IMG/VR virus record: IMGVR_UViG_3300042566_001780
Location: 124,001 to 188,000 of that record
Strand: one strand, 5' to 3'
Length of the DNA stretch: 64,000 bases
The stretch's first letter is position 1; each line of letters begins with the position of its first letter. The translations under genes and the position numbers were made by a program. The notes beneath the pieces were generated by a model. It was not told the origin of the DNA. It saw only the letters and a list, made by a program, of their open reading frames with translations, and made no database searches. This document shows positions 8,400-42,741 of the stretch, in pieces.

Positions 8400-9296
8400 A
8401 TGAAAAAGATTTCTATTCTCGCGCTCGCAGCCGTTACTTTTGCCGCCCATGCAGCTCCTGTTGGCATTGCTTCTGGTCAACCGACTGGCACCAATCACCC
8501 CATGGCACGAGATATTGCTGCGGTTTGTTCTACTGCAGATTCTCCCATCAACAACATTGTCAGTGATGGTTCTCTCGACAATCTGTTCAAGATCTATGGA
8601 GACAAGTCTGTGCAATATGGCATTGTTCAGGCAGATGCAATGGTCTATCAAAAGGGCCAAGACCCGAAAATGATGGAACGCATCATGATGGTCTTTCCAT
8701 TCTTTAGCACAGAAATTCATCTGGTAGCAAAAGCTGGATCGAATATCAATTCTCTTGCTGATCTTGCCGGAAAACGGGTTGTTGAAGGCCCTGAAGGTTC
8801 TGGCACATGGGTGACAGTGCAAGTCATCAAGCAGCTTACTGGTATGAAGTGGCAGGGTTTTTATGCTTCGCAGCAAGATGGCTTCAATGCAGTGGTAAAT
8901 GGTCAAGCAGATGCCGAATTCATTGTGGCTGGAAAGCCAATTGTCATGCTGCAAAAGAATCAAGGATTCAAACTGGTACCATTGTCTCATCCCAAACTTG
9001 ATTCCTTTGGACTGTATACCAAGACGATGATTCCGAGTGGTACCTATGAATCATCGAAAAGCACTGTAGGCACATACAAAGTTGACAACGTGCTTGCCAC
9101 ATTTGCATTCAAAAACCAGTACCAAAAAGAAATTGGTACTCTGGTGACATGTATTTCTCGCAACATCGAAAAGCTGCAGACCGGTGCATCCTTCCACCCA
9201 AAGTGGAAGGATGTCGATCCTAAGGATATTAACCGTATTCAATGGCCAGCGCATCCTGCTGCAAAAGCTGCGATTGAGCGTGAAATCAAGCGGTGA
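8400..9296 (+). CDS. TAXI-family TRAP transporter solute-binding protein
   Basis: Signal peptide (AAHA-A), IASGQPTGT, GSLDNL, YGIVQAD, EIHLVAKAGSNINSLADLAGKRVVEGPEGSGT. Confidence 0.85.
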   Translation: MKKISILALAAVTFAAHAAPVGIASGQPTGTNHPMARDIAAVCSTADSPINNIVSDGSLDNLFKIYGDKSVQYGIVQADAMVYQKGQDPKMMERIMMVFPFFSTEIHLVAKAGSNINSLADLAGKRVVEGPEGSGTWVTVQVIKQLTGMKWQGFYASQQDGFNAVVNGQADAEFIVAGKPIVMLQKNQGFKLVPLSHPKLDSFGLYTKTMIPSGTYESSKSTVGTYKVDNVLATFAFKNQYQKEIGTLVTCISRNIEKLQTGASFHPKWKDVDPKDINRIQWPAHPAAKAAIEREIKR

Positions 9297-10079: not shown

Positions 10080-11204
10080 ATGGCAAATGAAAAAGTCAAA
10101 AAAGTCAGTGTTGTTATTGGCCGCTTTTCTCCATTCCACAATGGACACAAGTACATTCTGGAAACTGTTGCCAAGCAATCTCATAAAGTCATTGTTCTGA
10201 TTGGGTCTTCTTTCCAATCGCGTTCATTGAAAAACCCGTTCACTTTTGCTGAACGTCAATCTGTTATCGAAGCTTGGGCCAAAGATAACGAGATTGAAAA
10301 CACCTACATTTATCCGATTCGCGACTATCCCTACAATGATGCGCAATGGATCAAATCTATCCAAGAAGCAGTGTCTTATGCTACGTTGCTCGACAATCGC
10401 CCTCTCGAAATCCATTTGACTGGGTGCGATAAAGATTCCTCTACTTGGTATCTCCATGCTTTCCCACAGTGGAAGACTCATTTCCTGTCGGAATACACTG
10501 GCCAGGATTTGAAGACTAACGCTACACTGGTTCGAGAAATTCTTTTTTCTGGCGATCCAATGTCTCATATTGCGCCTATGGTGCCAACTCAAACTCTTGA
10601 CTTTATTTCCAAGTTCAAACGAACTGCTGAATTTGAAAATCTGAAGCAGGAATATGAAATCAACCGCAAATATAAGGCGGCGTGGTCGGTAGCTCCTTAT
10701 GCTCCGACCTTTAACACTGCTGATGCAGTAGTGATTCAATCTGGGCATGTTCTTGTCGTAGAGCGTGGAGCAATGCCGGGTAAAGGTCTTTGGGCATTTC
10801 CTGGTGGATTCATAAATCAAAATGAGCGTATTCAGGATGCTGCAATTCGCGAGTTGATTGAAGAAACTGGTATTTGCTTGGCTGAAGGAAAAAGGAAGCA
10901 TGAACTAACGAAAAACATCCTTCAAGGCTCAATCCGAGCAAAAGAGATTTTTGATCATCCTACTCGATCTGAACGTGGCCGCACGATTACTGTGGCATAT
11001 TTGTTCAGGCTCGACGATACAAAGCCGCTTCCTCAAGTATCTGGTCAATACATTCCAGAATATGAAAGTCGTGGCCAACAGATTGTAGAAACTGCCAATG
11101 CATTTTGGCTGCCTATCAATGATGCTCTGCAACAAACTGAAAAATGGTTTGAAGATCACTGGAGTATTTTGGCATGGGCCACTGCAATTAAAGATTCTCG
11201 TTAA
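10080..11204 (+). CDS. nadM: Bifunctional NMN adenylyltransferase / ADP-ribose pyrophosphatase (NadM-Nudix)
   Basis: IGRFSPFHNGH (HxGH) nucleotidyltransferase motif, KNPFTFAER, Nudix box GGFINQNERIQDAAIRELIEETG, WFEDH terminus. Confidence 0.95.
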   Translation: MANEKVKKVSVVIGRFSPFHNGHKYILETVAKQSHKVIVLIGSSFQSRSLKNPFTFAERQSVIEAWAKDNEIENTYIYPIRDYPYNDAQWIKSIQEAVSYATLLDNRPLEIHLTGCDKDSSTWYLHAFPQWKTHFLSEYTGQDLKTNATLVREILFSGDPMSHIAPMVPTQTLDFISKFKRTAEFENLKQEYEINRKYKAAWSVAPYAPTFNTADAVVIQSGHVLVVERGAMPGKGLWAFPGGFINQNERIQDAAIRELIEETGICLAEGKRKHELTKNILQGSIRAKEIFDHPTRSERGRTITVAYLFRLDDTKPLPQVSGQYIPEYESRGQQIVETANAFWLPINDALQQTEKWFEDHWSILAWATAIKDSR

Positions 11205-11247: not shown

Positions 11248-11925
11248 ATGAGTATGAATATGAATTTCCCTGGTGCATCCAAGTTCATGGATCGCATGTT
11301 CCGTAAAGCTGACAACGTTGTATGGGATCTAACAAATGGATCCATCGGCGTCGTAACGTCTGAAGGCATTGCCACCCTTGAAGGTGAAGGCGATGATGCT
11401 CGCATCAACATTAACATGTTTGATGATTTTGGCATGGCACTTCCCGCCTTTGCCCAAAGCACCCCGAAAGATGGTGTGAAAGTCGGTGACATTATCTATC
11501 GTGGTTCCAGCAACAACATTGCTTGGGTCATCTCCAAGAACGAAGACAAGGGCACCTTCAAGCTGATGAAGCCCAATGGCGAAACTACCTCTTGGAATCC
11601 TCCCAAGGTCTCCATGCTTGGTTTTGAAAGTGGCGTGATGGTTCTTCGTTCGCTGGTTAGCATGTTGCCCAATGGTGATAAAGGCGTCAATCAAATGCAA
11701 ACTATGCTGATGCCGATGATGCTGATGGGCGGTCTTGAAGGCGAAGGTCTTGAGAAGATGATGCCGTTCCTTCTGATGAGCCAAATGAATGGTGGTGGCG
11801 ATTCTTCTGCTATGGGCGGTATGATGCAGGCCATGATGATGGCTCAAATGTTTAAGGGTGACGGAAAGCCTTCGCTGCCCAGCTTTGGTGGAAAGAAAAA
11901 CAATGGCCCTTTCTCGGGGAGCTAA
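11248..11925 (+). CDS. Hypothetical protein with Met/Gly-rich C-terminus
   Basis: RBS AAGGAG; 225-aa ORF. Confidence 0.75.
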   Translation: MSMNMNFPGASKFMDRMFRKADNVVWDLTNGSIGVVTSEGIATLEGEGDDARININMFDDFGMALPAFAQSTPKDGVKVGDIIYRGSSNNIAWVISKNEDKGTFKLMKPNGETTSWNPPKVSMLGFESGVMVLRSLVSMLPNGDKGVNQMQTMLMPMMLMGGLEGEGLEKMMPFLLMSQMNGGGDSSAMGGMMQAMMMAQMFKGDGKPSLPSFGGKKNNGPFSGS

Positions 11926-12017: not shown

Positions 12018-12359
12018 ATGAGACATTATGATGATGCTTTCACTAGAATCATTGAAATGTCAAAGCTGCCAAAAGAACGGCAACGGTTTTTCTTAGTAAG
12101 GGAACCCACTAATCCTTTTGACAAAAACGCAATTATGTTGCATGATGGAGTCAGAAAACTAGGTCATGTTTCTGCAGTTGAAGCCGTAAGGGTTAACAAA
12201 ATTATTCAGAAATTGGTGGCGGATACAAACAATGAGCAAGTTCTCATTGCTACTATCAAGCCGAAGACTGAAGAGTTTAGATGGGTTAGTTCGTTTTCAG
12301 TTGAAATCATCGGGCATGTTTATGAACGATATGCTCGCAAATTTGGTCAAATTTTTTAA
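12018..12359 (+). CDS. HIRAN-domain protein (true start probably upstream)
   Basis: FLVREPTNPFDKNAIML...KLGHV is typical of HIRAN; in-frame FATIVG precedes the ATG. Confidence 0.8.
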   Translation: MRHYDDAFTRIIEMSKLPKERQRFFLVREPTNPFDKNAIMLHDGVRKLGHVSAVEAVRVNKIIQKLVADTNNEQVLIATIKPKTEEFRWVSSFSVEIIGHVYERYARKFGQIF

Positions 12360-13010
12360 TCACTGTACAGGTTGATATGAATATCCATTAAGACCTTCTT
12401 TACATTGTTTACTAATTTTCCTTCTTGGTTCTCCAGTAACTCGTTCAGCCTCTCTTGCAGATCCAAATTTTCCATTAGGAGTTATATACCAACCCTTAAA
12501 AGCATGATGCATGTGACCACGCTGATTTAAACTAATTTGCAATGCCGTTTCGGGCTTATGTTTTTTACCATAAAATGGATTTTTTTCACCAGTGATAGCT
12601 AAGGCTATTTTGTCTTTTGATTGTTGTTTATGTTTTTTACCAAGCATAGTACCCGGTTTTCCAAAAGCTGGATTTTTGAATCCACTATTATCAACTGGGT
12701 ATAATCCATCATTATTATGCTTATTAAGAAAGCGAGGATTATCTCTAGCATTTATTCGTTGTAAAAAACGCGTTTCAAACTGTTTTGCTTTTTCTACGCT
12801 ATTGAAAACTTTTCTTATTTCAAAAATAGCATTGACGTCTTGCTTCAATAAGCGTTGAACTGTTTTTGAGCTTGAAAAATATGTATTTCCTAGATCTTTA
12901 GGCTTGCAACCTTTAGCATACTTTACACCATAGTAAATTTGGTTAAACATTGGAAACCGTATCACATATGTAAAGGGCGTTCTATCGCCAGCAGTATGTT
13001 GATAATTCAT
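12360..13010 (-). CDS. Free-standing homing endonuclease (GIY-YIG-like) with NUMOD3 DNA-binding motifs
   Basis: FTYVIRF...IYYGVKY...YFSSSK; KKHKQQSKDKI and KKHKPETALQI NUMOD3-like repeats; antisense insertion with AT-rich codons. Confidence 0.75.
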   Translation of the reverse strand: MNYQHTAGDRTPFTYVIRFPMFNQIYYGVKYAKGCKPKDLGNTYFSSSKTVQRLLKQDVNAIFEIRKVFNSVEKAKQFETRFLQRINARDNPRFLNKHNNDGLYPVDNSGFKNPAFGKPGTMLGKKHKQQSKDKIALAITGEKNPFYGKKHKPETALQISLNQRGHMHHAFKGWYITPNGKFGSAREAERVTGEPRRKISKQCKEGLNGYSYQPVQ

Positions 13011-13058: not shown

Positions 13059-13958
13059 ATGGGACAAGGTCGCTGGACATCTGATAGTTTTACAACTTAC
13101 GCATCCACCACCAATTATCGTGCAATGAGCCGTGATGCTGTTTTCAGCAAATCTGTTCAGGCTGAACTGAAGACTGAATCTATCAAGGTTCGTGAATCTC
13201 GTGACTCTGCTGATAGCCCCAATTCGACTCCAATTATCCTCGGTCTGGATGTGACAGGCTCGATGGGTGAATATGCTGAGCGCATTGCCAAGGATGAACT
13301 GCCGAAGCTGATGAATGCAATTTTGGAACAGTCTCCTGTTGCTGATCCGCATCTGATGTTTATGGCTATTGACGATGTGCATGCATACAGTCAAGTGCCG
13401 CTGCAGGTGTCTCAATTTGAAGCCGACATTCGAATTCTGGAACAGCTTCGCAAGATTGTTCTGGTTGGCGGTGGCGGTGGCAACAAGTCTGAGTCTTACG
13501 ACTTGGCATGGTACTGTGCTGGTATGAAGACTTCGATCGACTCTTTCGAGAAGCGTGGTGAAAAAGGTTTCTTGTTTACCTTTGGTGATGAAGAAGCCCC
13601 TTACGAAACTTTGTCGATCAACGAGCAGACTCAAGTGTTTGGCGCTGGACAATATATTCCTATGCAGCCTCGAGAAATCCTGGATGCTGCAAAAAAGATG
13701 TATAATGTCTTTCACATCGTTATTGAACAAGGAAGTTATGCTCGAAGCCGATTCGATTCGGTGAAGAAAACATGGACTGATTTGCTTGGTAATAATGTTC
13801 TGTTCCTGAAAGATTTTCGAAATCTGTCGGAACTGGTAACAAGTACTATTCGAATTGCAAAAGGCGAAGACATGAGTCAAGTCATTCACAATTCGTCTAT
13901 TCCTCAAGAATTGAAGTACGCTTACCAAAATGCGTACGCATCGATGGAAACTGCGTGA
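13059..13958 (+). CDS. von Willebrand factor A (vWA) domain protein
   Basis: IILGLDVTGSMG (MIDAS-like), GGGGGNKSESY, LFTFGDE. Confidence 0.8.
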   Translation: MGQGRWTSDSFTTYASTTNYRAMSRDAVFSKSVQAELKTESIKVRESRDSADSPNSTPIILGLDVTGSMGEYAERIAKDELPKLMNAILEQSPVADPHLMFMAIDDVHAYSQVPLQVSQFEADIRILEQLRKIVLVGGGGGNKSESYDLAWYCAGMKTSIDSFEKRGEKGFLFTFGDEEAPYETLSINEQTQVFGAGQYIPMQPREILDAAKKMYNVFHIVIEQGSYARSRFDSVKKTWTDLLGNNVLFLKDFRNLSELVTSTIRIAKGEDMSQVIHNSSIPQELKYAYQNAYASMETA

Positions 13959-13959
13959 A

Positions 13960-15255
13960 ATGAACCACATAGTTGTTGGCTCTGGCTACGGTGATGAAGG
14001 CAAAGGATTGATGACCGATTATTTGGTCCGTCAATCCAATGCTAAAAACGTCGTTCGGTTTAATGGTGGTGCTCAAGCGGGCCATACTGTCCAAACTGAT
14101 CATCGCCGTTATGTATTTGGACACTTGTCTGCAGGTACGTTTGCCGGAGCCAACACTATTCTGACTCGAGATTTCCTAATCAATCCTCGTGCATTGGTCA
14201 AGGAAATCCAGGATATGGAGGGCATTGGCCCCTCTTGTTATCCTGAAATCAAAGCGCATCGTAGTTGCCGAGTTACAACCATTTTCGATATTGCTATCAA
14301 TGCAGTGTTGGAAATTTCTCGTGGATCTAGTGCTCACGGCTCTTGCGGGATGGGTATCAATGAGACTGTAGTTCGAAATGATAACCCGCTGCTTTTTGGA
14401 ACTCGTTTGTATGATGTCAAGCAAATGAGTGTCAAACAACTTGCAGAAAAACTGAAAACCATTCATGATAAATGGGTACCAATTCGCCTGAAAGAGCATG
14501 GCATTACGATTGGTTCACTCGAGAGCATGAATGACAATTTTGCAAATATTCTTTGCAAAGAAATCAACTACATCCAAGAAGCACGGTTGATGCTTGATGC
14601 ATTGTCTGAAATTTCATATGATGATCAATCTGCGCTGATCGGTAATACGGTTTTTGAGGGTGCTCAGGGTCTTGGGCTTGACGAAGAATTTGGACATTTT
14701 CCACATGTGACCCGGTCAAAAACTGGATCTGTGTGGGCATTCGATTATTTGGATGATTATTTCTTTGGTCAATATGTAGGCAGCTTGGTTTACGGACGAT
14801 CTGGCACGTATTGGCTTGAAAATGTAGAAGTAGTATATGTCACCAGGGCGTATGCTACTCGTCACGGTAATGGACCGCTGTCTGAAGCTGGTGGAAATAT
14901 TGGTGATGGGTCAAATGTTTATGATTTGACTAACAAACCAAATCCATTTCAAGGATCACTTCGATTTGCTCCATTGAATTTGCAATTACTTCGAGATAAC
15001 ATTCAAAAAGATATTGCTCGAACTGATAGAAGTTTGCGGAAAAATGGAAACGCTCCACAACACACATACCAGAAAGTGATTGCACTCACCTGTATGGATC
15101 AACTTGGCAATTATGTCAATGTGATTGATGTTAACGGTGTTATTCGCCCAGTCCTCTCGTCTGATCTTCCACAAATGATTGAGGAACAGGTTGGACTTAG
15201 AGTAAAATACATTAGTCATGGGCCAAAAGCCTCTGACATCAAAAAAGTTTTCTAA
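13960..15255 (+). CDS. Divergent adenylosuccinate synthetase (PurA)-like protein
   Basis: Start moved to ATG 13960. GYGDEGKG, RFNGGAQAGHT, FEGAQG, TRAYATRHGNGP, ISHGP; the aspartate-binding loop is divergent. Confidence 0.85.
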   Translation: MNHIVVGSGYGDEGKGLMTDYLVRQSNAKNVVRFNGGAQAGHTVQTDHRRYVFGHLSAGTFAGANTILTRDFLINPRALVKEIQDMEGIGPSCYPEIKAHRSCRVTTIFDIAINAVLEISRGSSAHGSCGMGINETVVRNDNPLLFGTRLYDVKQMSVKQLAEKLKTIHDKWVPIRLKEHGITIGSLESMNDNFANILCKEINYIQEARLMLDALSEISYDDQSALIGNTVFEGAQGLGLDEEFGHFPHVTRSKTGSVWAFDYLDDYFFGQYVGSLVYGRSGTYWLENVEVVYVTRAYATRHGNGPLSEAGGNIGDGSNVYDLTNKPNPFQGSLRFAPLNLQLLRDNIQKDIARTDRSLRKNGNAPQHTYQKVIALTCMDQLGNYVNVIDVNGVIRPVLSSDLPQMIEEQVGLRVKYISHGPKASDIKKVF

Positions 15256-15345: not shown

Positions 15346-16737
15346 ATGGAACAACTTAGCTACAACCCTATCCTCGACGTCGATTCGTACAAAGCTGCAC
15401 ACCAGTTTTCGTACCCAAAGAACGTCACCGGCATGTTCTCTTATATTGAGGCACGCACCAAGAATGATGTGATGATTCCGTTTGGACTGTCGATGTTCTT
15501 GCAAAAGTACATGTCAATCCAAATAACGAAGGCTTATATCGATGAAGCTGAAGAATTCTTCAAGCTGCACGGTGAACCATTTTCTCGTGAACCCTGGGAG
15601 CACATTGTCAACGAATATGACGGCTTTATGCCTCTCACTATTCGTGCAGTACCTGAAGGAACTCCGGTGAAAAGCTCTAATGCAATTGTCACTGTTCAAT
15701 GTGATGATCCTGCAGTGCACTGGCTGTCTTCTTACGTCGAAACCAAAATCCAACGCGCAATTTGGTATCCTACTACGATTGCTTCAATGGACTATGCAAT
15801 CAAGCGGGTCTTTAAGGAATTCTATGAAGCTACTGGGGCAGATATGAATTTGCTCCCGTTTGCCCTCCATGATTTTGGTGCGCGTGGTGTCGCAAGCTAC
15901 GAGCAATCTGAAATTGGCGGTGCAGCACACATGGTCAACTTCATGGGTTCTGACACCGTGGCAGGTATTCGTGCTGCAAACTTCTATTACAGTGAGCAAA
16001 TGGCCGGGTTTTCTGTGCCGGCTACTGAGCACAGTGTGGAATGCTCGTTTGGTGAAGAAAATGAAATCGGTTATCTGGAACACGTCATTGACAATCTGGC
16101 CAAGCCTGGTGGTATTGTGTCTATTGTGATTGACGGCTATGATGTTTATCGTGCTGCGCAAACTCTTTGCACTACGCTGAAAGACAAGATCATTGCAAGC
16201 GGCGTCAAGGTCGTATTCCGCCCTGATAGTGGGGATATGCAAGTGGTGGTGCCTCGTATCCTTGAATTGCAGGCCGCTACTTTTGGTTATGAAGTCAATG
16301 AAAAAGGCTTCAAGAAGATTAAATACGTTGGCATTATCCAAGGTGATGGCGTTGATCACTTGTCCATTCGTTCGCTGCTTGGCAAAATGAAGGTGATGGG
16401 TTTCTCTGCTGATAACGTGGTTTTTGGATCTGGTGGTGCACTGCTCCAAAAGGTCAATCGAGACGTTTTCAAATTCGCCCAAAAAGCTTCTGCTGTTCGG
16501 ATTGATGGGAAGTGGGTCGGTATCAGTAAAAATCCAATCACCGATCCCGGAAAGCGAAGCAAGGAAGGCGTTTTGACTCTTGTTAAGAGTCGACTGACTG
16601 GTGAATACTCTACGGCTCGAATTGATGATAAGCGTCTTGATTCTGAGTTTGAAGACCAAATGGAACTTGTCTACTACAATGGCAAGATCATGAATTCTCC
16701 AACTTTGTCTGAAATTCGAGAACGCTGCAAGCTGTAA
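15346..16737 (+). CDS. nadV: Nicotinamide phosphoribosyltransferase (NAMPT/NadV)
   Basis: ILDVDSYKAAH, LHDFGARG, VPATEHS, VSIVIDGYD, VVFRPDSGD, IIQGDG, FGSGGALLQKVNRD, KRSKEG. Confidence 0.95.
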   Translation: MEQLSYNPILDVDSYKAAHQFSYPKNVTGMFSYIEARTKNDVMIPFGLSMFLQKYMSIQITKAYIDEAEEFFKLHGEPFSREPWEHIVNEYDGFMPLTIRAVPEGTPVKSSNAIVTVQCDDPAVHWLSSYVETKIQRAIWYPTTIASMDYAIKRVFKEFYEATGADMNLLPFALHDFGARGVASYEQSEIGGAAHMVNFMGSDTVAGIRAANFYYSEQMAGFSVPATEHSVECSFGEENEIGYLEHVIDNLAKPGGIVSIVIDGYDVYRAAQTLCTTLKDKIIASGVKVVFRPDSGDMQVVVPRILELQAATFGYEVNEKGFKKIKYVGIIQGDGVDHLSIRSLLGKMKVMGFSADNVVFGSGGALLQKVNRDVFKFAQKASAVRIDGKWVGISKNPITDPGKRSKEGVLTLVKSRLTGEYSTARIDDKRLDSEFEDQMELVYYNGKIMNSPTLSEIRERCKL

Positions 16738-16740
16738 ACG

Positions 16741-16765
16741 TATGGGGACCTAAAAGGTCCCCATA
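16741..16765 (+). terminator. Hairpin/terminator after nadV
   Basis: TATGGGGACC-TAAAA-GGTCCCCATA. Confidence 0.7.
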
Positions 16766-18022: not shown

Positions 18023-20017
18023 ATGTCTGATTTCAAGTTTTTTGCTACCAAAGTTTTTGACAAGTTTACTGAAATGTCGAAGGGTGAACTGTTCACCGTC
18101 GATATTGATGGTGACAACCTGTACGCCCATTACATCAGCTCTTTCCCTGATGGCACTAATCCGATCTTCAAGACTCGGACAGAGCATGAGTGCTCTACCT
18201 GCAAGAACTTCATTCGCAATCTGGGTCTTGTTGTTTCCATCTCTGGTGGCAAACTGGATTCTGTTTGGAATGTGAAGGGTCTGCAAAGTCCCTACAAAGA
18301 AGTGGCTGCTGCACTTCATCAATATGTGGTGGTGAATAATGTCAAGACCATCTTCCGCTCTACAGAACGTTCGTATGGTGTTGCCGAATCCAAGCAATTG
18401 ATTGACAACAACATTCATCGTTGGAATCACCTACACGGTGTTGTGGCTGCAAAGCATTATGCCAAAGCAAATGCTGCAACTCAAATTGGCGAGTTCAATG
18501 CCCATATTCAGGTATTTTCTCGTGGGCTGGAAGAATTTACGAAAGACTCGATTGATTCTGTTCTGGATCTGATTGCCAGCAAGTCCATTTATCGCGGTGA
18601 AGAGCATAAGCCGGCTGTCGATGCGTTCAAGAAGCTGTTTGATGCTTATCACAAGCTGAAGACTGCCAAAGAGAAGAACATTTTCGTCATGGAAAATGCA
18701 AATACCTTTGGTGCTCGTATTCGTAACACTGTGATTGGCACCCTGATTCAAGATCTGTCGGCTGGTGAAGACTTGGAAAAGGCAGTTCGCTCGTTTGAAA
18801 CGAAGGTTTCACCTACCAACTACAAGCGCACTACGGCTCTCATTACACCCCGAATGATTCAAGATGCAATGAAGACTATCGGTGAACTTGGTCTTGAGTC
18901 TGCGCTGGAACGTCGTCTGGCAAACATCTCGGATGTTAGTGTCAATAACGTTCTGTGGGTGGATAATGCTGTCAAGCCCATGATGAAGGGCGGTATTGAA
19001 GGCTTGTTGATGGAGGCAACTTCGAGCAAGGATGCTGCTATTAGCTTCAAGAATCCGGTCAATATCGGGATTGAAGAGTTTATGGCTGATATTCTGCCAA
19101 GCGCTTCTGAAATCAACATGTGCGTGAAGAATGAGCATCTGGCAAATTTTGCTACGCTCACTGCTCCTGTTCATGCTGATTCTGAAAAACTGTTTAAGTG
19201 GAACAATGCGTTTGGTTGGTCGTATGATGGCAACATCACTGATACCATTCGTGAACGAGTGAAGGCTGCTGGTGGTAACGTTGATGCTAAGCTTCGATTT
19301 AGCCTGTCGTGGTTCAACTACGATGATCTGGACATCTATGTGACTGAACCTAACGGTCGAGAAATTTATTTCTGCAACAAGGATGGAAAACTTGATGTTG
19401 ACATGAATGCTGGTGGTGGTCGCAGCCGTACCCCGGTTGAGAACGTCAGTTTCAAGAATCCTCAAGATGGAGTTTACGTTGTCAAGGTGAATCAGTATTC
19501 TCGTCGTGAAACTACAAATGTTGGTTTTGTGATTGAAGCAGCCTCGGGTTCTGGTACTAATCAGTACTCGTACAATAAGGCAGTTTCTGGCAAAATTAAT
19601 GTTGGTAGCTTTACCGTGAAGAACGGTGTCATTGTTGATGTCAAGATGGGTGCTGGAATTTCTGGTACTGGAATCTCCGAAACTAAATGGGGTGTCAAGA
19701 CTGAGAGCCCGGTGAAAGTGAAGACTGTTATGTTTAGCCCCAACTATTGGGATGACAATAAGGTCGGTAACAAGCATTGGTTCTTTATCTTGGAAGGTTG
19801 CAAAACTGACCAAGCAGCCCGAGGGATTTATAATGAATTCCTTGACGCGCGACTTGAAAAGCACCGCAAAGTGTTTGAAGTCCTGGGTGACAAGACAAAG
19901 TGTCCAGCTATTGATGATCAATTGAGTGGTTTGGGTTTCTCTTCTACTCGAAAAGATCAAGTTTTGGTTAGTGTGAAACTCGGTAAATCGACAAAAGTGT
20001 TTAATATCAATTTTTAA
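18023..20017 (+). CDS. Large hypothetical protein (664 aa) with YfaP/DUF2135-like segment
   Basis: HECSTCKNF Cys motif; DDLDIYVTEPNG...LDVDMNAGG...PVENV segment. Confidence 0.7.
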   Translation: MSDFKFFATKVFDKFTEMSKGELFTVDIDGDNLYAHYISSFPDGTNPIFKTRTEHECSTCKNFIRNLGLVVSISGGKLDSVWNVKGLQSPYKEVAAALHQYVVVNNVKTIFRSTERSYGVAESKQLIDNNIHRWNHLHGVVAAKHYAKANAATQIGEFNAHIQVFSRGLEEFTKDSIDSVLDLIASKSIYRGEEHKPAVDAFKKLFDAYHKLKTAKEKNIFVMENANTFGARIRNTVIGTLIQDLSAGEDLEKAVRSFETKVSPTNYKRTTALITPRMIQDAMKTIGELGLESALERRLANISDVSVNNVLWVDNAVKPMMKGGIEGLLMEATSSKDAAISFKNPVNIGIEEFMADILPSASEINMCVKNEHLANFATLTAPVHADSEKLFKWNNAFGWSYDGNITDTIRERVKAAGGNVDAKLRFSLSWFNYDDLDIYVTEPNGREIYFCNKDGKLDVDMNAGGGRSRTPVENVSFKNPQDGVYVVKVNQYSRRETTNVGFVIEAASGSGTNQYSYNKAVSGKINVGSFTVKNGVIVDVKMGAGISGTGISETKWGVKTESPVKVKTVMFSPNYWDDNKVGNKHWFFILEGCKTDQAARGIYNEFLDARLEKHRKVFEVLGDKTKCPAIDDQLSGLGFSSTRKDQVLVSVKLGKSTKVFNINF

Positions 20018-24092: not shown

Positions 24093-27000
24093 ATGCCAAC
24101 ATTAGTAAGTTCTGGTGACATCACTATTAGCGATGTCAATGATGGTCTTAATGCAAGACTATCTAATGAGTCACACGTTATTCCAACAGATGCAGATGGG
24201 TTAAATGGAGATTTCTCTGGTTGCTCTACTACTATATCTGTGTTTGTTGGTCCCATAGATGATTCTGCAAACTGGACTATTACAGCTTTGGCATCTCCAG
24301 GTTTAACTGGTACATTAGCTGGCAGGACGTATACGGTAACTGCATTGAGCGGAGATATTGGGTATGTTGATCTAACTGCTTCTAAAACTGGTTTCCCATC
24401 TATTACGTCTAGATTTTCTGTTTCTAAAGCAGTTGCTGGCACCAATGGTCAAGATGCATCTCAAATTGCTGTAGTTGCAACCCAATGGGATTATCGTGAC
24501 GATGATGCAGCTTGGGGCATCAGAATTAACGGTACACTGCAAACAGGCGCTGCACGTGGTCATAAACTTGTAGTATTGAACCCAGCTACTAATACAGTAT
24601 CGATAAATCAAAACTACGATACTTATGGATCTGTATCTAATACAGATAGTTTGGCTGCTGCAATTTCTGCGGTTGCGGACGGACTAGTGGTCATTCTTAC
24701 CACATATGATGCTACTCAATGTAATCAAAATTTGAGAAATGCTTTAAGATTATGCGGAAGTGAATCAACTGAAACCTGGGCAACACAACGTAAATCTCAC
24801 GCTTTCATTGGCCAAAAAGGTCTTCCTATTGGTGCTGCATATGAAAAGACTGGATTTGGCACCACCTCTGCTGGTACTTCAAGAGTAGCTGCATATTTTA
24901 CCACTAGTGGCGTTGTGCGAAATGGATCTACTGCATTTAATGCAGTTTCAGCAATTCTTTCTAATGAAGCACATGTGTTTACTGCATCAACTGCCGGTGT
25001 GGTTGCTTCATATGTTGGATCTGGCACTGAGCTACGGGTGTATGATGGTACTGTTTTATTGACATATGATGGTTCTGGTACTTTACCAGGTACTTGGAAG
25101 TTTACAAATGTTGCTTCAAACATCACAATTGGGGCGATATCTGATAGCGGCGCATTTGCCACTATTGGCGATCATTCAGGTGTTGCTGATGGTGTTGACA
25201 CATCTAGCATTACATACACTATTACTGGTAAATCGTTAATTAATTCCGATTTCACTTTAGTGAAGGTACAGACCTTTAGTAAAGCTAAACGTGGAATAGA
25301 AGGCGATAATGCTATATCCGTAACGCTATCAAATGAAACTCACGTTTTTCCAGCTACTTACACAAATATAGTTTCTAATTATAGGAATTCTGGAACTGAA
25401 ATCCAAGTTCTTGAAGGAGCAACTGAATTAGCATATGATGCGGCCGGGTTAACTCCCGGCACATGGAAAGTTGATACCTCATCAAGTAACATAGTTGCCG
25501 GTCCTGTCAAAAAATTTATTTTGGGAGATGATTGGGTTTTTAATGATGGGATGGGCAGCAGTGGATGGGGGGTTAATACTGCAGTAACTTGTATTATTTG
25601 GGCAAATAATCAATTTATTGCTGGTGGCACAAATGGAAAAATTGCTACTAGTTCTGATGGAATTACCTGGTCGGTAAATGAAAATTTATCAAAAACTGGG
25701 TGGGGAGATAGCGTAATTTTAGACATAATTTGGACTGGTGTTCAGTATGTTTTAGTAGGAGCCAATGCTACCTATTCTTCAGATCTTAGTATTTGGTATG
25801 CAAATGGATCAATAAATTCTACAGCTGTGGCTACTAGTTCTGATGGAATTAATTGGGAATATCAACCCGACTTAAATCTAAAAACAAATAATGGCGCATT
25901 ATGCATAGCTTGGAATGGATCAAAATATGTTGCTGGTGGTCAAGCTGGGTTAATAGCAACCAGTTTAGATGCTAAAACCTGGGAAATTAGCACAAATTTG
26001 TCGTCTACTGCGTGGGGCACAAATGTATCTGGTGATTCAGTTGATGTTCTTGATATAAATTGGAATGGATCGCAATTTTTAGCTGTAGGGGTTTTGGGGC
26101 GTGTGGCCACCAGTCCTGACGGTGTAACTTGGACATATCAGGCTGGGTTAACTAGTACAGCATGGGGGACCAGTTTAACTGGCGCGGTTAGATCAATTAA
26201 TTGGAATGGGTCCCAGTATGTTATTGTTGGGCAAGGCGGGAGAGTGGCTACAAGTCCTAATGGTATCACGTGGACATATCAAAGTGGATTAGCAAGTACT
26301 GCTTGGGGTGCAGGAGCAATATATTCTATAAATTGGAATGGATCTCAATATATTGTAGTTGGCGCATCTGGCAAAGTAGCTACAAGCCCAGATGGAATAA
26401 CTTGGACATATCAGAGCGGGATAACGAGTGTATGGGGGTCGAGTTATGATGCCTTTACTGTTATTTGGAATGGATCCAAATATGTCGTTGGTGGCGTTAG
26501 TGGATCAGTGGCAACGAGCGCCGATGGTATTACTTGGGCAAATCAGGGTGGGCTAGCTGGAACTGATAAGTGGTTAGATTCACCAGTTAATTCAGGAACA
26601 TTATTATCTAGATATGCTATTATTGGTGGTGACGGAGCTAAATTAGCAGTTAGATTTAATGATGAATGGGAATTTCAAGATGCTTTTGCCATTAAATCTG
26701 CTATCGATCTAACAGTTTTAGATTTTAATGGTTCGCAATATATTGTTGGCGGGACAAATGCAACGCTAGCTATAAGCAGTGATGGAATATATTGGACATA
26801 CCAAGATGGACTGGCTAATGCGAGCTGGGGGACCAGTGCTACTTACGATATAAATTGGAATGGATTTCAATACATGGCTGTCGGAGCTGGAGGCCGAGTA
26901 GCAACAAGTCCAGATGGTATTACCTGGACATATCAAAGCAGTCTAGCTAGTACAACTTGGGCGACAGCTACGGCTTATTCGATTAGTTGGAATGGATCTC

Positions 27001-30000
27001 AATATGTTATAGTTGGTACTTTAGGCAGGGTCGCTACAAGTCCAGATGGCATAACTTGGACTTATCAGGGCGGCTTGGCTAGTACAACTTGGAGCACTGC
27101 TACGGCCCGCTGTATTGTTTGGAACGGGTCACAATATCTCGTTGTAGGACAATCTGGACGAGTAGCTACAAGCCCAGATGGCATAACTTGGACTTATCAG
27201 GGTGGACTTAGAGCTACTTCGTGGGGAACATTAGATACGGTGTTTGATGTCCATTGGAATGGATCACAGTATTTGGTTGTTGGAGATTCAGGTAAAGTTG
27301 CAACTAGTCCAGATGGAATAACTTGGACAAATCAAACAGGCTTATCGAGTACTACTTGGGGGACGGTCAATGAAATATATTCAATTGGTTGGGATGGATC
27401 TCAATATGTAGTTTGCGGCATGGATGGTGATATAGCTACTAGCTTTGATGGTATAACATGGAAATACCAAGCGGGGCTTTGGAATACACCATGGGGAGCA
27501 TTAGATTATGCTAATAGCATTATTTGGGATGGAACACAATTCTTAGTTGTCGGGGATAATAGAAAATTAGCTACCAGCGTAGATGGAGTAAACTGGAAAT
27601 TTAAACCTAATTTATCTGGATGGAAAAATTCTGGGAATGTAAACCATCTTGCAAATATAGATAATACTGTTTATGCTCTTGGATCTGCTGGGAATATTGC
27701 ATGTTCAAATAATCTTATAGATTGGACATTTTTAGCCCCGGTTGGTGCTGTTGACATAGGGGCCGTTTCGCTTACTGGTATTGCAAAATCTGCAAATGAC
27801 ACATTATGTGCAATTGGGTCAAATAATCTAGTTATGGTGGGCAATGAGAATCAAAACTTATCATTACGCCTCGGTTATGCATCAATAAACACACGCTTTT
27901 TTGCTAATACCGCAAATAAAATAAATTGGAATGGTACACAATACCTTGCTGTTGGTAATGATGCAAGCATAGCAACTAGCGTAGATGGCGTAACGTGGGT
28001 TAATCAAGTTGGCTTAATAAGCGCTGACTGGGGAATAAGTAATATAAATGATGTCCATTGGAATGGATCACAATATGTCGTTGTTGGCAATTCTGGCAAA
28101 GTAGCTACGAGTCCAGATGGAATAACTTGGACAAATCAAACAGGCCTATCGAGTACTGCTTGGGGGATAGATGATATTTTTGCAGTGGCGTGGAATGGAT
28201 CGCAATACATAGTTGGTAGCAATTATGGTGGTATTGCAACTAGCCCAGATGGAATAACTTGGACATATAGAAGTGGATTAGCAAGCACAACGTGGGGAGC
28301 GGCTGCTGTGCGTGCAATTAACTGGAATGGATCGCAATATCTAGTGGCTGGTGCTTCTGGCAAAGTAGCTACAAGTCCAGATGGTATTACATGGGCATAT
28401 CAGGGGGGTTTAACCAGCACTACATGGGGGACAACTACGGCATATTTTGTTAACTGGAATGGATCACAGTATCTTATAGGCGGCGCAGCTGGGCGAATAG
28501 CAACTAGCCCAGATGGAATAACTTGGACATATAGAAGTGGATTAGCAAGCACAACGTGGGGGTCAGCATCGACAGCTATTGTTTATTCTATTAATTGGAA
28601 TGGATCGCAATATCTAGTGGCTGGTGGATCAGGTAAAGTTGCAACTAGCCCAGATGGAATAACTTGGACATATCAGAGCGGGTTGACTAGCACTGCGTGG
28701 AGTTCTAGCGCTGTTTTTTCAATTAGCTGGAATGGATCGCAATATCTAGTTGTTGGGGAATTGGGTAAAGTTGCAAGTAGCACAACTGGAGTATCTTGGG
28801 TGTATGGCCGCAGATTAACAAGTACTACATGGGGCGGGAGTGATATAAACGATATAGTTTGGAATGGATCTCAATATCTAGTTATTGGTGATTCAGGTAA
28901 AGTTGCAACTAGCACAACTGGAGTATCTTGGTCTTATCAACCATTATTGCAAGATACTTTATGGAGATCTACAAATATTAACGCAATTAACTGGAATGGA
29001 TCTCAATATCTTATATGCGGCGAGGGCGGTGCTATAGCAACCAGCCCAAATGGGGTAACTTGGACATATCAAAGTGGATTGACGAGCACTGCATGGGGGA
29101 CAACTGCCGTTTATGCAATTAACTGGAATGGATCGCAATATCTCATAGCTGGTGGATCAGGTAAAGTTGCAACTAGTCCAGATGGAATAACTTGGACAAA
29201 TCAAACAGGCCTATCGAGTACTGCTTGGGGGACAAATACTATATATTCTATTAGTTGGGGTGGATCTCAATATGTTATTGCTGGGAATTCTGGCGCTATA
29301 GCAACCAGCCCAAATGGGGTAACTTGGACATATCAAGGTGGTTTAGCCAGTACTGCTTGGGCGACTAGTGCAGTACGCAGCATTGTTTGGAATGGATCGC
29401 AATATCTAGTGGCTGGTGCTTCTGGCAAAGTAGCAACAAGCCCAAATGGAGTAACTTGGACATATCAAGGTGGTTTAGCCAGTACTGCTTGGGGTGCCGA
29501 AATAGTTTATTCAATAAGCTGGAATGGTTCACGTTATATAGTAGCAGGTGGTGATATTGGATCTACTGGTAAAGTAGCCACAAGTTCAAATGGCGTAACA
29601 TGGACATTTGCAGATATAAATAATGATTCTTCGTCTACGCCCATTTTAACAAAAAGTTATTACGATGGAACACGATTCATATTATGCAGCTCAGGCCAAT
29701 TGTGGTTTAGCACGGTCGGGGATATTAGCTTTTTATATCCTACTTGGACTATTACCCAAGCATTGCCAGCCGGATCTGAATGGAATACAAATACCTATGC
29801 TTCATCAATAGCATGGGGCAATAATGTTTTTTGTGTTGTTGGCGAATACGGAAGAGTGGCTACGAGTGTTGATGGTAATATTTGGATACACCAGGAATTG
29901 CTTAATTCAATTGGCGGATGGAACTATTCAAACATTAATCAAGTAATTTTTGCAAATGGAGTATTTTGCATTATTGGGGATTATGGCAATACAGCCATAA

Positions 30001-41044: not shown

Positions 41045-41129
41045 CCATCAGATGCCAAACTGGTTATGGCACTCGACTTTTAATCGAGCGCGTTACGCTT
41101 TGTGGGTTCGAGTCCCACCTGATGGACCA
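41045..41129 (+). tRNA. tRNA-Lys(UUU) with long variable arm
   Basis: CCATCAG/CTGATGG, A73, CCA; CTCGA-CTTTTAA-TCGAG; variable arm CGCGTTACGCTTT. Confidence 0.85.
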
Positions 41130-41137
41130 AAGTTTTT

Positions 41138-41213
41138 GCCTGTTTAGCTCAGTTGAGAGAGCAAAATGTTGATAACGTTTAGGTCGCTGGTTTGAGTCCA
41201 GCAACAGGCACCA
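41138..41213 (+). tRNA. tRNA-Ile(GAU)
   Basis: GCCTGTT/AACAGGC, CCA; AAATG-TTGATAA-CGTTT. Confidence 0.9.
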
Positions 41214-41219
41214 AAAAAT

Positions 41220-41304
41220 GTCGCGTGTTGGCTGCTGGTAACGGCCCTCACCCTTTCAAGGTGACGTCTTTATGACTGCGGTTCGATTCCGCCACGCGAC
41301 GCCA
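41220..41304 (+). tRNA. tRNA-Glu(UUC) with long variable arm
   Basis: GTCGCGT/ACGCGAC, G73, CCA; TCACC-CTTTCAA-GGTGA; variable arm CGTCTTTATGAC. Confidence 0.85.
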
Positions 41305-41310
41305 AGTTAT

Positions 41311-41382
41311 TGGGGGATTGTCATCTGGTGATGACATTGCGCTTTGACCGCAAGAAGGTGGGTTCGATCCCCACTCCCCTTG
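41311..41382 (+). tRNA. tRNA-Gln(UUG), no encoded CCA
   Basis: TTGCG-CTTTGAC-CGCAA; T arm GTGGG-TTCGATC-CCCAC; 1-72 mismatch. Confidence 0.8.
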
Positions 41383-41430
41383 CACTTGACATAATTGTTC
41401 TCCTATAAATAGAGTATAAGGAGAACAATT

Positions 41431-42124: not shown

Positions 42125-42197
42125 TGGCCGGTAGCTCAGTTGGTAGAGTGTCGGGTTGTTACCCCGGGTGTCGCGAGTTCGAATCTTGCCCGGCCAG
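42125..42197 (+). tRNA. tRNA-Asn(GUU), no encoded CCA
   Basis: TGGCCGG/CCGGCCA, G73; TCGGG-TTGTTAC-CCCGG. Confidence 0.88.
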
Positions 42198-42210
42198 CAA
42201 ATAGCATTAT

Positions 42211-42288
42211 AGGGGAGTAGCTCAATTGGCAGAGCGCTGGTCTCCAAAACCAGAGGCTGTTCCGGTTCAAATCCGACCTCCCCTGCCA
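42211..42288 (+). tRNA. tRNA-Trp(CCA)
   Basis: AGGGGAG/CTCCCCT, G73, CCA; CTGGT-CTCCAAA-ACCAG; irregular T stem. Confidence 0.85.
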
Positions 42289-42343
42289 ATAATTATAACT
42301 TCGATCATCAAAATTTGGTGATGATGGAGATTTTAAAAACAAT

Positions 42344-42419
42344 CTGCACTTAGCTGTTCTGGTGAAAGCATGGCGCTGAAAACGCCGGGAGACTGGTTCG
42401 ATCCCAGTAGTGCAGGCCA
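42344..42419 (+). tRNA. tRNA-Phe(GAA)
   Basis: CTGCACT/AGTGCAG, CCA; TGGCG-CTGAAAA-CGCCG. Confidence 0.85.
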
Positions 42420-42426
42420 AAATTAT

Positions 42427-42500
42427 GGTGTTGGTAAGATAGTGGTAGTCCGCCTGTCTGTGAAACAGGAAGCGAGGGTTCGATTCCCCCCTTCACCCCA
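42427..42500 (+). tRNA. tRNA-His(GUG), degenerate
   Basis: CCTGT-CTGTGAA-ACAGG; two T-T mismatches in the acceptor; T rather than G at -1. Confidence 0.7.
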
Positions 42501-42507
42501 AAATAAT

Positions 42508-42583
42508 GCCAATGAAGCAATCTGGTGATTGCACCTGACTGTCGATCAGGTTCAGGCGAGTTCGATCCTCGTCATTGGCGCCA
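42508..42583 (+). tRNA. tRNA-Asp(GUC)
   Basis: GCCAATG/CATTGGC, G73, CCA; CCTGA-CTGTCGA-TCAGG. Confidence 0.88.
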
Positions 42584-42588
42584 TTCAT

Positions 42589-42663
42589 GGTTCATTGGCC
42601 GAGAGGCGAGGCAACTTCTTCATGCGGAGTCCTACAGTAGTTCGAATCTACTATGAACCACCA
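42589..42663 (+). tRNA. tRNA with CAU anticodon (Met or Ile2)
   Basis: GGTTCAT/ATGAACC, A73, CCA; ACTTC-TTCATGC-GGAGT. Confidence 0.8.
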
Positions 42664-42667
42664 AAAA

Positions 42668-42741
42668 GCCCCTGTAGTTCAATGAAAGAACACACCTTTG
42701 GTACGGGTGAGAAGACAGTTTGATTCTGTCCTTGGGCACCA
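42668..42741 (+). tRNA. tRNA-Thr(GGU), degenerate
   Basis: CACCT-TTGGTAC-GGGTG; acceptor has two mismatches; CCA encoded. Confidence 0.7.

Follow-up and report, generated by a model that had tools for sequence, protein, structure and literature searches.

A PurA-like gene paired with a vWA gene between the two NAD-rebuilding genes of a jumbo phage, and its possible part in NAD/adenylate salvage

A jumbo phage carries, between its two NAD-rebuilding genes natV and nadV, a divergent relative of the AMP-making enzyme PurA together with a predicted metal-binding vWA protein. The same uncharacterized pair recurs in hundreds of phages and in bacteria, where it lies next to the gene for the ADP-ribose sensor NrtR in 24 of 80 loci; one possible interpretation, which we give a probability of roughly 0.35, is that the pair is an unrecognized arm of NAD/adenylate salvage. 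The window analyzed here is the whole stretch of 64,000 nucleotides taken from positions 124,001 to 188,000 of IMG/VR record IMGVR_UViG_3300042566_001780. A near-identity DNA search of the phage collection returned no match to it, and a literature search on a PurA-like plus vWA module returned no paper describing one. The features of the locus are collected in Table 1.

Table 1. Features of the locus, with positions counted from the first letter of the window
Positions	Strand	Feature	Observations
10080..11204	+	natV-like bifunctional NMN adenylyltransferase + Nudix protein (CTP_transf_like + NUDIX by Pfam)	Upstream flank of the cassette; position conserved in relatives
11248..11925	+	X225 protein (our name): conserved N-terminal domain plus a Met/Gly-rich tail	Third partner of the module in many phages; replaced by a J-domain/kinase-like protein in other phages and in bacteria
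12018..12359	+	Small HIRAN-like protein (HIRAN, 25.8 bits)	Between X225 and the vWA gene in the closest phage relatives only (10 loci)
12360..13010	-	Free-standing homing-endonuclease-like gene (NUMOD3)	Interruption of the cassette, not a part of it; in relatives L007-L015 (locus numbers of our survey) the HIRAN-like gene abuts the vWA gene
13059..13958	+	vWA-fold protein (predicted), 299 aa, with a MIDAS motif	AAGGAG ribosome-binding site 7 nt before the ATG; TGA at 13956-13958
13960..15255	+	PurA-like (adenylosuccinate-synthetase fold) protein of a distinct clade	Junction with the vWA gene TGAaATG (1-nt gap); an in-frame ATG at 13930 lies inside the vWA gene and is not the conserved start
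15346..16737	+	nadV (nicotinamide phosphoribosyltransferase; NAMPT_N + NAPRTase by Pfam)	Downstream flank of the cassette, starting 90 nt downstream of the PurA-like gene; position conserved in relatives
16741..16765	+	Terminator-like hairpin, 11-bp stem followed by a T-rich tail	Directly after nadV; no such site on the + strand between 13059 and 16741 (consensus scan only)

An earlier note, made from the sequence alone, had described a PurA paralogue with a remodeled substrate loop, coupled by a 1-nt gap to a MIDAS vWA gene and directly preceding nadV, and this observation was confirmed. In an alignment with E. coli PurA, the P-loop GDEGKG lies at residues 11-16 with the PurA Asp kept (D12 in the window protein), QAGHT at 39-43 stands against NAGHT in PurA, TNKPNPFQGSLR at 324-335 takes the place of the GATTGRRRR aspartate loop, and TCMD at 377-380 stands against TKLD. 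The note had the aspartate loop replaced, but the last Arg of the loop (R335) aligns with PurA R305 and is 100% conserved in 280 family members, so the loop is remodeled rather than wholly replaced.

The PurA-like protein matches the Pfam superfamily model Adenylsucc_synt (PF00709) at 134 bits, and its AF2 model (pLDDT 89.8) has E. coli PurA 1cg3 as its best Foldseek match (E 1.7e-25). However, it scores only 103.5 and 120.8 bits against the curated equivalog models of canonical PurA, whose cut-offs are 395.55 bits (TIGR00184) and 402 bits (NF002223), and only the N-terminal 250-310 residues align. Whether it clusters within canonical PurA had been named beforehand as a point that would count against the note's reading. 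In a quick tree it fell into a large clade separate from canonical PurA and from PurZ, with a support of 100 without Bxz1 and 88 with it, whereas the canonical PurA clade had a support of 96. The tree also indicated exchange between phages and bacteria. The Melainabacteria locus L175, from which a motif-based script extracted no canonical PurA sequence, was left out of the tree and the alignment. Five of five bacterial genomes that carry the PurA-like gene also carry a normal purA (512-589 bits).

To examine which active-site residues are kept, we aligned 280 family members, taking the ligand roles of the PurA residues from the H. pylori AdSS structure paper (PMC11276676); residues are given in E. 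coli numbering. Asp13, Lys16 and His41, which serve catalysis and phosphotransfer, and Gln224 on the base are 100% conserved, and Arg143 of the other subunit (Arg143'), Thr239, Arg305 and Asp333 are conserved as well. A smaller alignment had suggested that Arg143' is lost, but the 280-sequence alignment shows that it is kept as R139. Among the contacts to the IMP 5'-phosphate and ribose, Arg143' and Thr239 are kept, whereas Asn38 is Gln, Thr129 is Cys, Val273 is His and Arg303 is lost. In the L-aspartate loop only Arg305 is kept; Thr301 is Gln in 100% of members, Thr300 is W/F/Y and Arg303 is S/T/K. Lys331 of the NKxD motif is Cys or His, and the family carries new invariant residues, including His126, Arg296 and His302. 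The replacements are also fixed in a 41-sequence alignment, and because they are fixed across hundreds of homologues they are not decay or chance.

The vWA protein has no Pfam hit, and none of 120 listed homologues, out of 6079 proteins passing E 0.001, has a precomputed Pfam domain. A PDB sequence search found nothing, the ESM Atlas returned only "hypothetical protein" clusters, and the only other sequence matches were phrog_2971 (unknown function) and a faint ViaA hit. The fold was recognized from its AF2 model (pLDDT 89), which Foldseek matched with probability 1.0 to vWA domains and integrin I-like domains, including those of integrin I, Ku80 and NorD, and which VIA-align matched over residues 54-269 with Z 14.4 and rmsd 3.2 over 192 residues. 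The MIDAS residues D64-x-T66-G-S68 and G176-D177-E178 are invariant or nearly so; the middle Ser/Thr of the motif lies within GGGGGNxSES (S144/S146) and was assigned by eye. The protein also has a conserved N-terminal tail, M-G-x-x-[RST]-[WF]-x4-[WYF]-x2-Y, at its very start, where the pLDDT is low.

To test whether the pairing is general, we surveyed gene neighborhoods, and three features emerged that the earlier note had missed. First, the vWA gene lies directly upstream on the same strand in 80 of 83 phage loci and 75 of 80 bacterial loci, the exceptions being mostly contig ends. The intergenic gap has a median of about 43 nt, and no fusion of the two genes was seen in the 163 loci. Second, a third partner usually precedes the vWA gene. 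A J-domain/kinase-like protein is present in 27 phage and 54 bacterial loci, with HPD in 77 of 85, and the X225/S205 family (X225 matches the S205 family by HHalign at 95.6%) is present in 42 phage loci. The same family precedes the vWA gene in Vibrio phage phiKT1024 and, with a HIRAN-like gene between them, in Rhizobium phage RHph_TM39. The possibility that the phage's own J-domain gene belongs to the module was ruled out, because it encodes a classic DnaJ/CbpA-type protein about 140 kb away. Third, the module is not phage-specific, as it also lies in bacterial chromosomes, although patchily; it was present in only 3 of 201 sampled Clostridiaceae genomes.

The link to NAD salvage is stronger than could be seen from the window alone. 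The order natV-X225-HIRAN-vWA-PurA-like-nadV recurs on independent phage contigs, and a similar order is found in RHph_TM39. In bacteria, nrtR lies directly beside the operon in 24 of 80 loci from several phyla, and the NrtR assignment was supported by PF21906 (60-94 bits in 9 of 9 tested). In Clostridia the module extends nrtR-prs-like-pncA-like-nadV-(PARG) operons: one has the order nrtR-prs-like-isochorismatase-NAMPT-PARG-J-vWA-PurA-like, the isochorismatase being PncA-like, and a second nrtR operon (L122) has an HD-domain gene and lacks PARG. NrtR is released from DNA by ADP-ribose (PMC2330246), but the module is not among the named regulon members of that paper, which also left an nrtX-nrtY pair unexplained. 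A scan for the NrtR operator (a 21-bp palindrome with a GT-N7-AC core) in 14 divergent nrtR/operon intergenic regions and an alignment of three Massilia regions gave no convincing operator, but only conserved blocks with ACGATA repeats and one candidate shared by the two Neomegalonema loci. The NAD link is by neighborhood only, and it holds for about a quarter of phage loci (nadV within 10 kb in 20 of 83) and about 30% of bacterial loci.

These observations are tentatively explained by a conserved three-part module composed of a chaperone-linked partner, a MIDAS vWA protein and a PurA-like enzyme. The enzyme keeps what adenylosuccinate synthetase needs for its first half-reaction, namely the P-loop, the Mg/base Asp13, the acid His41, Gln224 on the purine, and Arg143 from the partner subunit and Thr239 on the 5'-phosphate, so that in this view it most likely still phosphorylates O6 of a purine 5'-mononucleotide at the expense of GTP or ATP, in a dimer. 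The aspartate pocket has been rebuilt and Val273 at the ribose is now His, so the second half-reaction most likely uses an amine other than L-aspartate, such as ammonia or a neutral or mono-carboxylate amine, and the product would be AMP or an N6-substituted adenylate made independently of the host PurA/PurB route. The vWA protein is inferred to be an obligate regulatory or scaffolding subunit acting through its MIDAS site, and the J-domain protein, or in this phage the Met/Gly-rich-tail protein, is inferred to couple the pair to Hsp70-type chaperoning. In the phage the module is probably co-transcribed with natV and nadV and would support rebuilding of the NAD+/adenylate pool when host NADases destroy NAD+. 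Our analysis establishes the gene anatomy, the fold (from models), the residue conservation, the clade and the synteny in phages and bacteria, whereas the reaction and its substrates, the amine donor, the physical complex and the physiological role are inferred, with no biochemical datum for any member.

Several points weigh against this reading. Rebuilding AMP from IMP is not an obvious bottleneck of NAD salvage, and a need for chaperone-linked and vWA partners is unusual for a plain metabolic enzyme. A complex prediction for the vWA and PurA-like proteins scored 0.00, which is not evidence either way. In addition, several residues are shared with PurZ (F/Y for Trp11, Thr for Gly294, Cys for Lys331), hinting that the purine or the NTP may differ from IMP and GTP. 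The earlier note had inferred a different amine donor or nucleotide substrate, citing PurZ as a phage precedent, and had suggested recycling of AMP/IMP from Nudix cleavage or synthesis of a novel nucleotide. This interpretation is supported in part: a PurA-fold paralogue distinct from canonical PurA, a reasonable inference of a different donor and the NAD link hold up, a PurZ-type enzyme is not supported, a purine 5'-mononucleotide substrate remains likely on sequence grounds, and the recycling and novel-nucleotide proposals remain hypotheses.

Among the alternatives, the least unlikely is a protein-directed or signaling module, in which the PurA-like enzyme would act on a protein amine, for example the exposed, near-universal N-terminal glycine of its vWA partner, or would make a nucleotide signal within a J-domain/kinase-like + vWA + enzyme conflict or regulatory system, with the NAD genes as neighbors only. 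Consistent with this, the enzyme is paired with a protein-interaction domain, the third partners carry a J-domain or a GroEL-like Met/Gly tail, the vWA N-terminus is conserved despite its low pLDDT, T301 and R303 are the ones lost among the aspartate-loop contacts, and the distribution is patchy with exchange between phages and bacteria. However, the complex prediction lent no support, PADLOC defense models gave no hit for the vWA, PurA-like, X225 or J-domain proteins and only weak PDC-M03B hits for the HIRAN protein, the bacterial neighbors are ordinary chromosomal genes rather than defense islands, and no precedent exists for protein N6-purinylation.

It is more doubtful that the enzyme acts directly on a pyridine or dinucleotide intermediate of NAD metabolism, for example by amidation of NaMN or NaAD through an acyl-phosphate or by re-amination of a hypoxanthine analogue of NAD or ADP-ribose. 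Its position between natV and nadV, the clostridial operons with PncA-like, Prs-like, NAMPT and PARG genes together with nrtR, and the new invariant residues speak for this possibility, but the strictly kept Asp13, Gln224, Arg143' and Thr239 fit a purine mononucleotide better than a nicotinate or a dinucleotide.

A PurZ-like step in the synthesis of a modified purine for phage DNA, such as an N6-substituted or 2-amino adenine, is similarly doubtful. PurZ shows that PurA-fold enzymes can do this in phages (PMC12884076), and the family shares with phiVC8 PurZ F/Y for Trp11, Leu for Lys18, Asn for Gln34, Ser for Thr128, Thr for Gly294 and Cys for Lys331, the residues at Trp11 and Gly294 being two of the three said to make room for the guanine 2-amino group (bioRxiv 10.1101/2025.10.22.683976). 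On the other hand, Asp13 is kept in 100% of members whereas PurZ has Ser (PMC12884076), the PurZ model NF038379 scores 51.9 bits against a cut-off of 300, the protein has the long PurA architecture (about 400-430 aa, against 343 aa for phiVC8 PurZ), and PurZ still uses aspartate whereas here the aspartate loop is rebuilt. No YfbR-like (DatZ) match was found in the 292-kb phage record, which is only about 82% complete, and a MazZ model search is void because it did not detect its control genomes. A DNA-replacement pathway also does not explain the module in bacterial chromosomes beside nrtR.

An ordinary adenylosuccinate synthetase carried as an auxiliary metabolic gene to boost AMP synthesis, perhaps insensitive to host feedback and differing by neutral drift, agrees with the kept catalytic residues and fold and with the database label but is similarly doubtful given the sub-cut-off scores, the separate clade, the family-fixed changes, the coexisting purA, the absence of purB from the phage record and the vWA partner, which a plain metabolic gene would not explain. 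Very unlikely, though not excluded, is a first PurA-fold ligase with a protein as its amine substrate, which after making 6-phosphoryl-IMP would transfer the purine nucleotide onto the N-terminal glycine of the vWA partner or onto a client held at the MIDAS site, creating an N6-linked protein-nucleotide adduct controlled by a J-domain/Hsp70 arm and switched on by ADP-ribose through NrtR, a device that phages would use while rebuilding NAD+.

Phage NAD+ reconstitution is a current topic in phage-host conflict, and the known routes use two enzymes each. The window encodes both predicted enzymes of the NadV + NMNAT-Nudix route (KVP40-type NadV/NatV; NARP2), which needs only these two, and the vWA, PurA-like and X225 genes are extra and also occur without nadV or natV nearby in about three quarters of phage loci. 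This widespread and uncharacterized gene set is wedged between two known enzymes. The vWA protein has thousands of homologues, the PurA-like clade has hundreds in the samples taken here, and the set is carried by cultured phages of Vibrio, Rhizobium and Mycobacterium, which makes the question directly testable; among these are Vibrio phages phiKT1024 and Va1, Rhizobium RHph phages and mycobacteriophage Bxz1, where the module is gp247-gp250. If the enzyme aminates a purine nucleotide with a donor other than aspartate, it would add a new reaction to the PurA superfamily, after PurA and PurZ, and a new component to NAD/adenylate homeostasis. Our results also correct a database label, as more than 200 phage genomes call these genes "adenylosuccinate synthetase" or "2-aminooxy adenylosuccinate synthetase".

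The vWA protein also recalls the vWA/MIDAS adaptors of chaperone-like remodeling pairs (NorD-NorQ, CbbO-CbbQ, ViaA-RavA, BchD-BchI), in that a MIDAS vWA protein is encoded next to the enzyme it may serve and its structural matches include the NorD and BchD vWA domains. However, no recurrent MoxR-type AAA+ neighbor appeared in the 83 phage or 80 bacterial loci and no AAA_3 match was found in the phage record, the recurrent partner being instead a J-domain protein or a Met/Gly-tailed protein. An Rfam scan of eight bacterial loci and of the window found no riboswitch, and one tRNA lies beside the operon of bacterial locus L093.

The 291,687-bp IMG/VR virus record, of which bases 124001-188000 were analysed, is about 82% complete by CheckV. 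It looks like a jumbo phage, as it has tRNA arrays and many phage-family proteins, and a near-identity search of the phage collection returned no near-identical record. Two arrays hold 11 tRNAs in all (Lys, Ile, Glu, Gln; Asn, Trp, Phe, His, Asp, Met, Thr). A further tRNA with a CUA anticodon, called "Pyl" by ARAGORN and scoring 59.7 bits with the Rfam tRNA model, stands alone just downstream of the NAD island and may be an amber suppressor, although the genes read here close normally under table 11.

Coordinates of the features described (window positions unless a locus is named; L numbers denote phage or bacterial loci, and G000:C1 the whole phage record)
Feature	Position	Strand
Periplasmic binding protein, TAXI/NMT1_3 type	8400-9296	+
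natV (NMNAT + Nudix)	10080-11204	
X225-family protein	11248-11925	
Homing-endonuclease-like gene (NUMOD3)	12360-13010	-
Predicted vWA protein (299 aa)	13059-13958	+
PurA-like protein (start ATG 13960)	13960-15255	
nadV	15346-16737	
tRNA, CUA anticodon	17916-17992	+
phrog_1735 protein (664 aa)	18023-20017	+
Raised GC skew	26001-30000	
tRNA array	41045-41383	+
tRNA array	42125-42741	+
X225-family protein, locus L001	L001:4039-4752	
X225-family protein, locus L002	L002:3741-4532	
Prs-like protein, Firmicute nrtR operon	L130:1775-2578	
Prs-like protein, Firmicute nrtR operon	L122:3040-3831	
Flavin amine oxidase, Clostridium carboxidivorans P7	L107:9282-10961	
DnaJ/CbpA-like protein (outside the window)	G000:C1:277168-278064	

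The vWA reading frame is preceded by AAGGAG and ends in TGA, and the PurA-like frame opens one base later. The PurA-like protein matches Pfam Adenylsucc_synt at 134 bits, but only over residues 4-308, whereas it matches phrog_1211 over its full length. It scored 103-121 bits against the NCBIfam PurA equivalogs, whose cut-offs are about 400, and 52 bits against PurZ, whose cut-off is 300. The AF2 model (pLDDT 89.8) is closest to E. coli PurA (Foldseek E 1.7e-25), and PurZ0 and PurZ follow at about 1e-14 to 1e-12. The four motif differences from PurA listed in the earlier note are all present, so its observation of an altered PurA paralogue coupled to a vWA gene holds. The upstream protein has no Pfam hit but is predicted with pLDDT 89 to fold into a vWA domain (Foldseek probability 1.0; VIA-align Z 14.4 with rmsd 3.2 over 192 residues to integrin beta I-like domains), and its DxTGS and GDE MIDAS residues are invariant or nearly so. 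A strong terminator-like hairpin follows nadV, and none lies between the vWA gene and nadV.

To see whether these substitutions are shared by relatives, we first collected the family. A word-based search returned more than 120 full-length relatives at 38-57% identity, many of them on contigs of 100-340 kb, and a pattern scan found 519 relatives in IMG/VR and 477 in GTDB genomes. We then aligned 280 members with E. coli PurA, four other canonical PurAs and phiVC8 PurZ and mapped the PurA ligand residues, whose roles are those described for the H. pylori enzyme (PMC11276676). In E. coli numbering, the residues kept at about 90-100% are the P-loop G12-G17 including Asp13 and Lys16, His41, Thr42, Gly127, Arg143 (from the partner subunit), Gln224, Thr239, Arg305, Asp333 (90%, otherwise Asn) and Ser414/Gly416. 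The changes fixed within the family are Lys18 to Leu (88%), Gln34 to Asn (100%), Asn38 to Gln (100%), Thr128 to Ser (100%), Thr129 to Cys (94%), Val273 to His (100%), Gly294 to Thr (99%), Gly298 to Asn (94%), Thr300 to Trp, Phe or Tyr (96% combined), Thr301 to Gln (100%) and Lys331 to Cys or His (85% and 13%), and Arg303 is not conserved. So the machinery for the 6-phosphoryl intermediate is intact and that for a 5'-monophosphate is largely kept, while the aspartate pocket and the ribose contact are rebuilt, a pattern that indicates selection for another specificity and not decay.

Several of the changes are shared with phiVC8 PurZ, namely F/Y for Trp11, Leu18, Asn34, Ser128, Thr for Gly294 and Cys for Lys331. 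However, the defining PurZ change, Asp13 to Ser (PMC12884076), is absent. A quick maximum-likelihood tree placed the family in its own clade, with SH-aLRT support of 100 without Bxz1 gp250 and 88 with it, separated by a long branch from a canonical PurA clade (support 96). Phage and bacterial members are interleaved. Because this is a quick tree and its root is arbitrary, we claim only the separation. Five of five bacterial genomes with the paralogue also hold a canonical purA of 512-589 bits. A previous study reports 481 phage PF00709 homologues, and those that are neither PurZ nor in the E. coli PurA clade are left uncharacterised there (PMC12884076).

We next asked how constant the pairing of the two genes is. 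A tblastn search showed that the vWA-like and PurA-like proteins occur in the same cultured phages: about 200 Mycobacterium cluster C phages, 10 Rhizobium phages and 6 Vibrio phages. The vWA gene lies upstream on the same strand in 80 of 83 phage loci, and two of the three exceptions are at or within about 1 kb of a contig end. The same was seen in 75 of 80 bacterial loci, where the other five are contig ends or a frameshifted copy. The gap between the two genes is short (median about 43 nt; 125 of 155 gaps are 150 nt or less). No fusion of the two core genes was seen, a complex prediction gave no verdict, and no MoxR-type ATPase accompanies the module. The vWA protein starts, almost universally, with M-G-x-x-[RST]-[WF]-x4-[WYF]-x2-Y, a tail that has low model confidence.

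A third gene usually precedes the vWA gene, and it comes in one of two forms. The first encodes a protein of about 350 aa with an N-terminal J-domain, in which HPD is present in 77 of 85, and a kinase-like body that lacks a clear HRD/DFG; it occurs in 27 phage and 54 bacterial loci, and Bxz1 gp247 belongs to it. The second encodes a protein of 200-260 aa with a Met/Gly-rich tail. The X225 and S205 families of this form are related (HHalign probability 95.6%, E 1e-8) and together cover 42 phage loci, and they include the protein in the window and those upstream of the vWA gene in Vibrio phage phiKT1024 and in Rhizobium phage RHph_TM39, where a HIRAN-like gene lies between them. The X225 family has no Pfam or PHROG annotation, and its C-terminal tail is made of Met/Gly-rich repeats that, by eye, resemble the GGM tail of GroEL. 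The phage also encodes a classic DnaJ/CbpA-like J-domain protein (72 bits to the Pfam DnaJ model) outside the window. In the window, a free-standing homing-endonuclease-like gene, whose N-terminus looks GIY-YIG-like by eye, is inserted between the HIRAN-like and vWA genes, which abut in related contigs.

The window's order, natV, X225, HIRAN-like, vWA, PurA-like, nadV, is repeated on three unrelated metagenomic contigs, one of 340 kb. Rhizobium phage RHph_TM39 has a PRT-like gene, an NMNAT/Nudix gene, three hypothetical genes of which the last is the X225 homologue, and then the HIRAN-like, vWA and PurA-like genes, and Vibrio phage phiKT1024 has a NADAR gene close by. Among the 83 phage loci, nadV lies within 10 kb in 20 and natV in 19, whereas nadV-like genes occur in about 4% of all phage records; because the loci are related to one another, these figures give only a rough sense of enrichment. 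Uptake genes also seem to belong to the island. A periplasmic binding protein with a signal peptide is conserved upstream of natV in related phage contigs (L008, L009, L010, L013 and L017), two of which (L008 and L009) carry an ABC ATPase, and locus L007 has a PnuC-like NMN transporter and an AAA_28 protein after nadV.

In bacteria, a gene with Nudix and NrtR winged-helix domains lies directly beside the operon in 24 of 80 loci, either divergent or co-directional (PF21906 at 60-94 bits in 9 of 9 tested). As titled in their records, these loci include Rhizobiales, Caulobacter, Massilia, Clostridium, Myxococcota, Desulforapulum and Pyrinomonadaceae. Two Firmicute loci carry long operons: one runs nrtR, Prs-like, isochorismatase (PncA-like), NAMPT, microbial PARG, J-domain protein, vWA, PurA-like, and the other nrtR, HD, Prs-like, isochorismatase, NAMPT, J-domain protein, vWA, PurA-like. 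The Prs-like proteins next to NAMPT in nrtR operons are short (about 265 aa, with weak Pribosyl_synth hits), and they could be PRPP synthetases or ADP-ribose pyrophosphokinase-like enzymes. NrtR is the ADP-ribose-released repressor of NAD genes (PMC2330246), and the same paper lists an unexplained NrtR-regulated pair, nrtX-nrtY. A scan of 14 divergent nrtR/operon intergenic regions and an alignment of three Massilia regions gave no clear NrtR operator, and an Rfam scan of eight bacterial loci and of the window found no riboswitch. The Clostridium carboxidivorans locus lies among ordinary chromosomal genes, not in a prophage, and in strain P7 a flavin amine oxidase gene follows the PurA-like gene by 82 nt on the same strand. 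Only 3 of 201 sampled Clostridiaceae genomes have the module, so it is an accessory trait exchanged between phages and bacteria.

What the analysis shows directly is the gene anatomy, the predicted folds, the residue conservation, the separate clade and the gene order; everything about function, including the chemistry, the amine donor and the role of the partners, is inferred from conservation and gene order. By homology with PurA, the enzyme should bind an NTP and a purine 5'-mononucleotide in a dimeric site, deprotonate N1 with Asp12 and transfer the gamma-phosphate to O6. The leaving phosphate should then be displaced by an amine that is not L-aspartate, because two of the three main aspartate contacts are replaced by Gln and by a non-conserved residue, and an aromatic residue has appeared; candidate donors are ammonia or a neutral or mono-carboxylate amine. 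The interpretation in the earlier note, that a different amine donor or nucleotide substrate is used, is partly supported. Either GTP or ATP is possible, as Asp333 is kept but Lys331 is Cys, as in the ATP-using phiVC8 PurZ. In this view the vWA protein would be an obligate partner acting through its MIDAS site, and the J-domain or Met/Gly-tail protein would link the pair to Hsp70-type chaperoning, both points resting on gene order alone. The neighbourhood places the module in the response to NAD+ breakdown, and in the phage it is wedged into the nadV/natV island, which is reported to rebuild NAD+ against NAD-depleting defence. The phage record, which is incomplete, holds no purB, prs, Hsp70, DatZ-like or MoxR gene, and the MazZ search had no working control. 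We hold this reading tentatively, with a probability of roughly 0.35.

The main alternative, which we consider less likely, is that the target of the enzyme is a protein or that the trio is a signalling or conflict device. A plain PurA, a PurZ-like DNA-modification step and direct action on a pyridine or dinucleotide each appear unlikely.

Beyond the island, a protein of phrog_1735 (763 bits, unknown function) is encoded downstream and is also seen near the module in three other loci (L027, L081 and L085). Further along the window, GC skew rises sharply (0.22-0.25) compared with the rest of the sequence.
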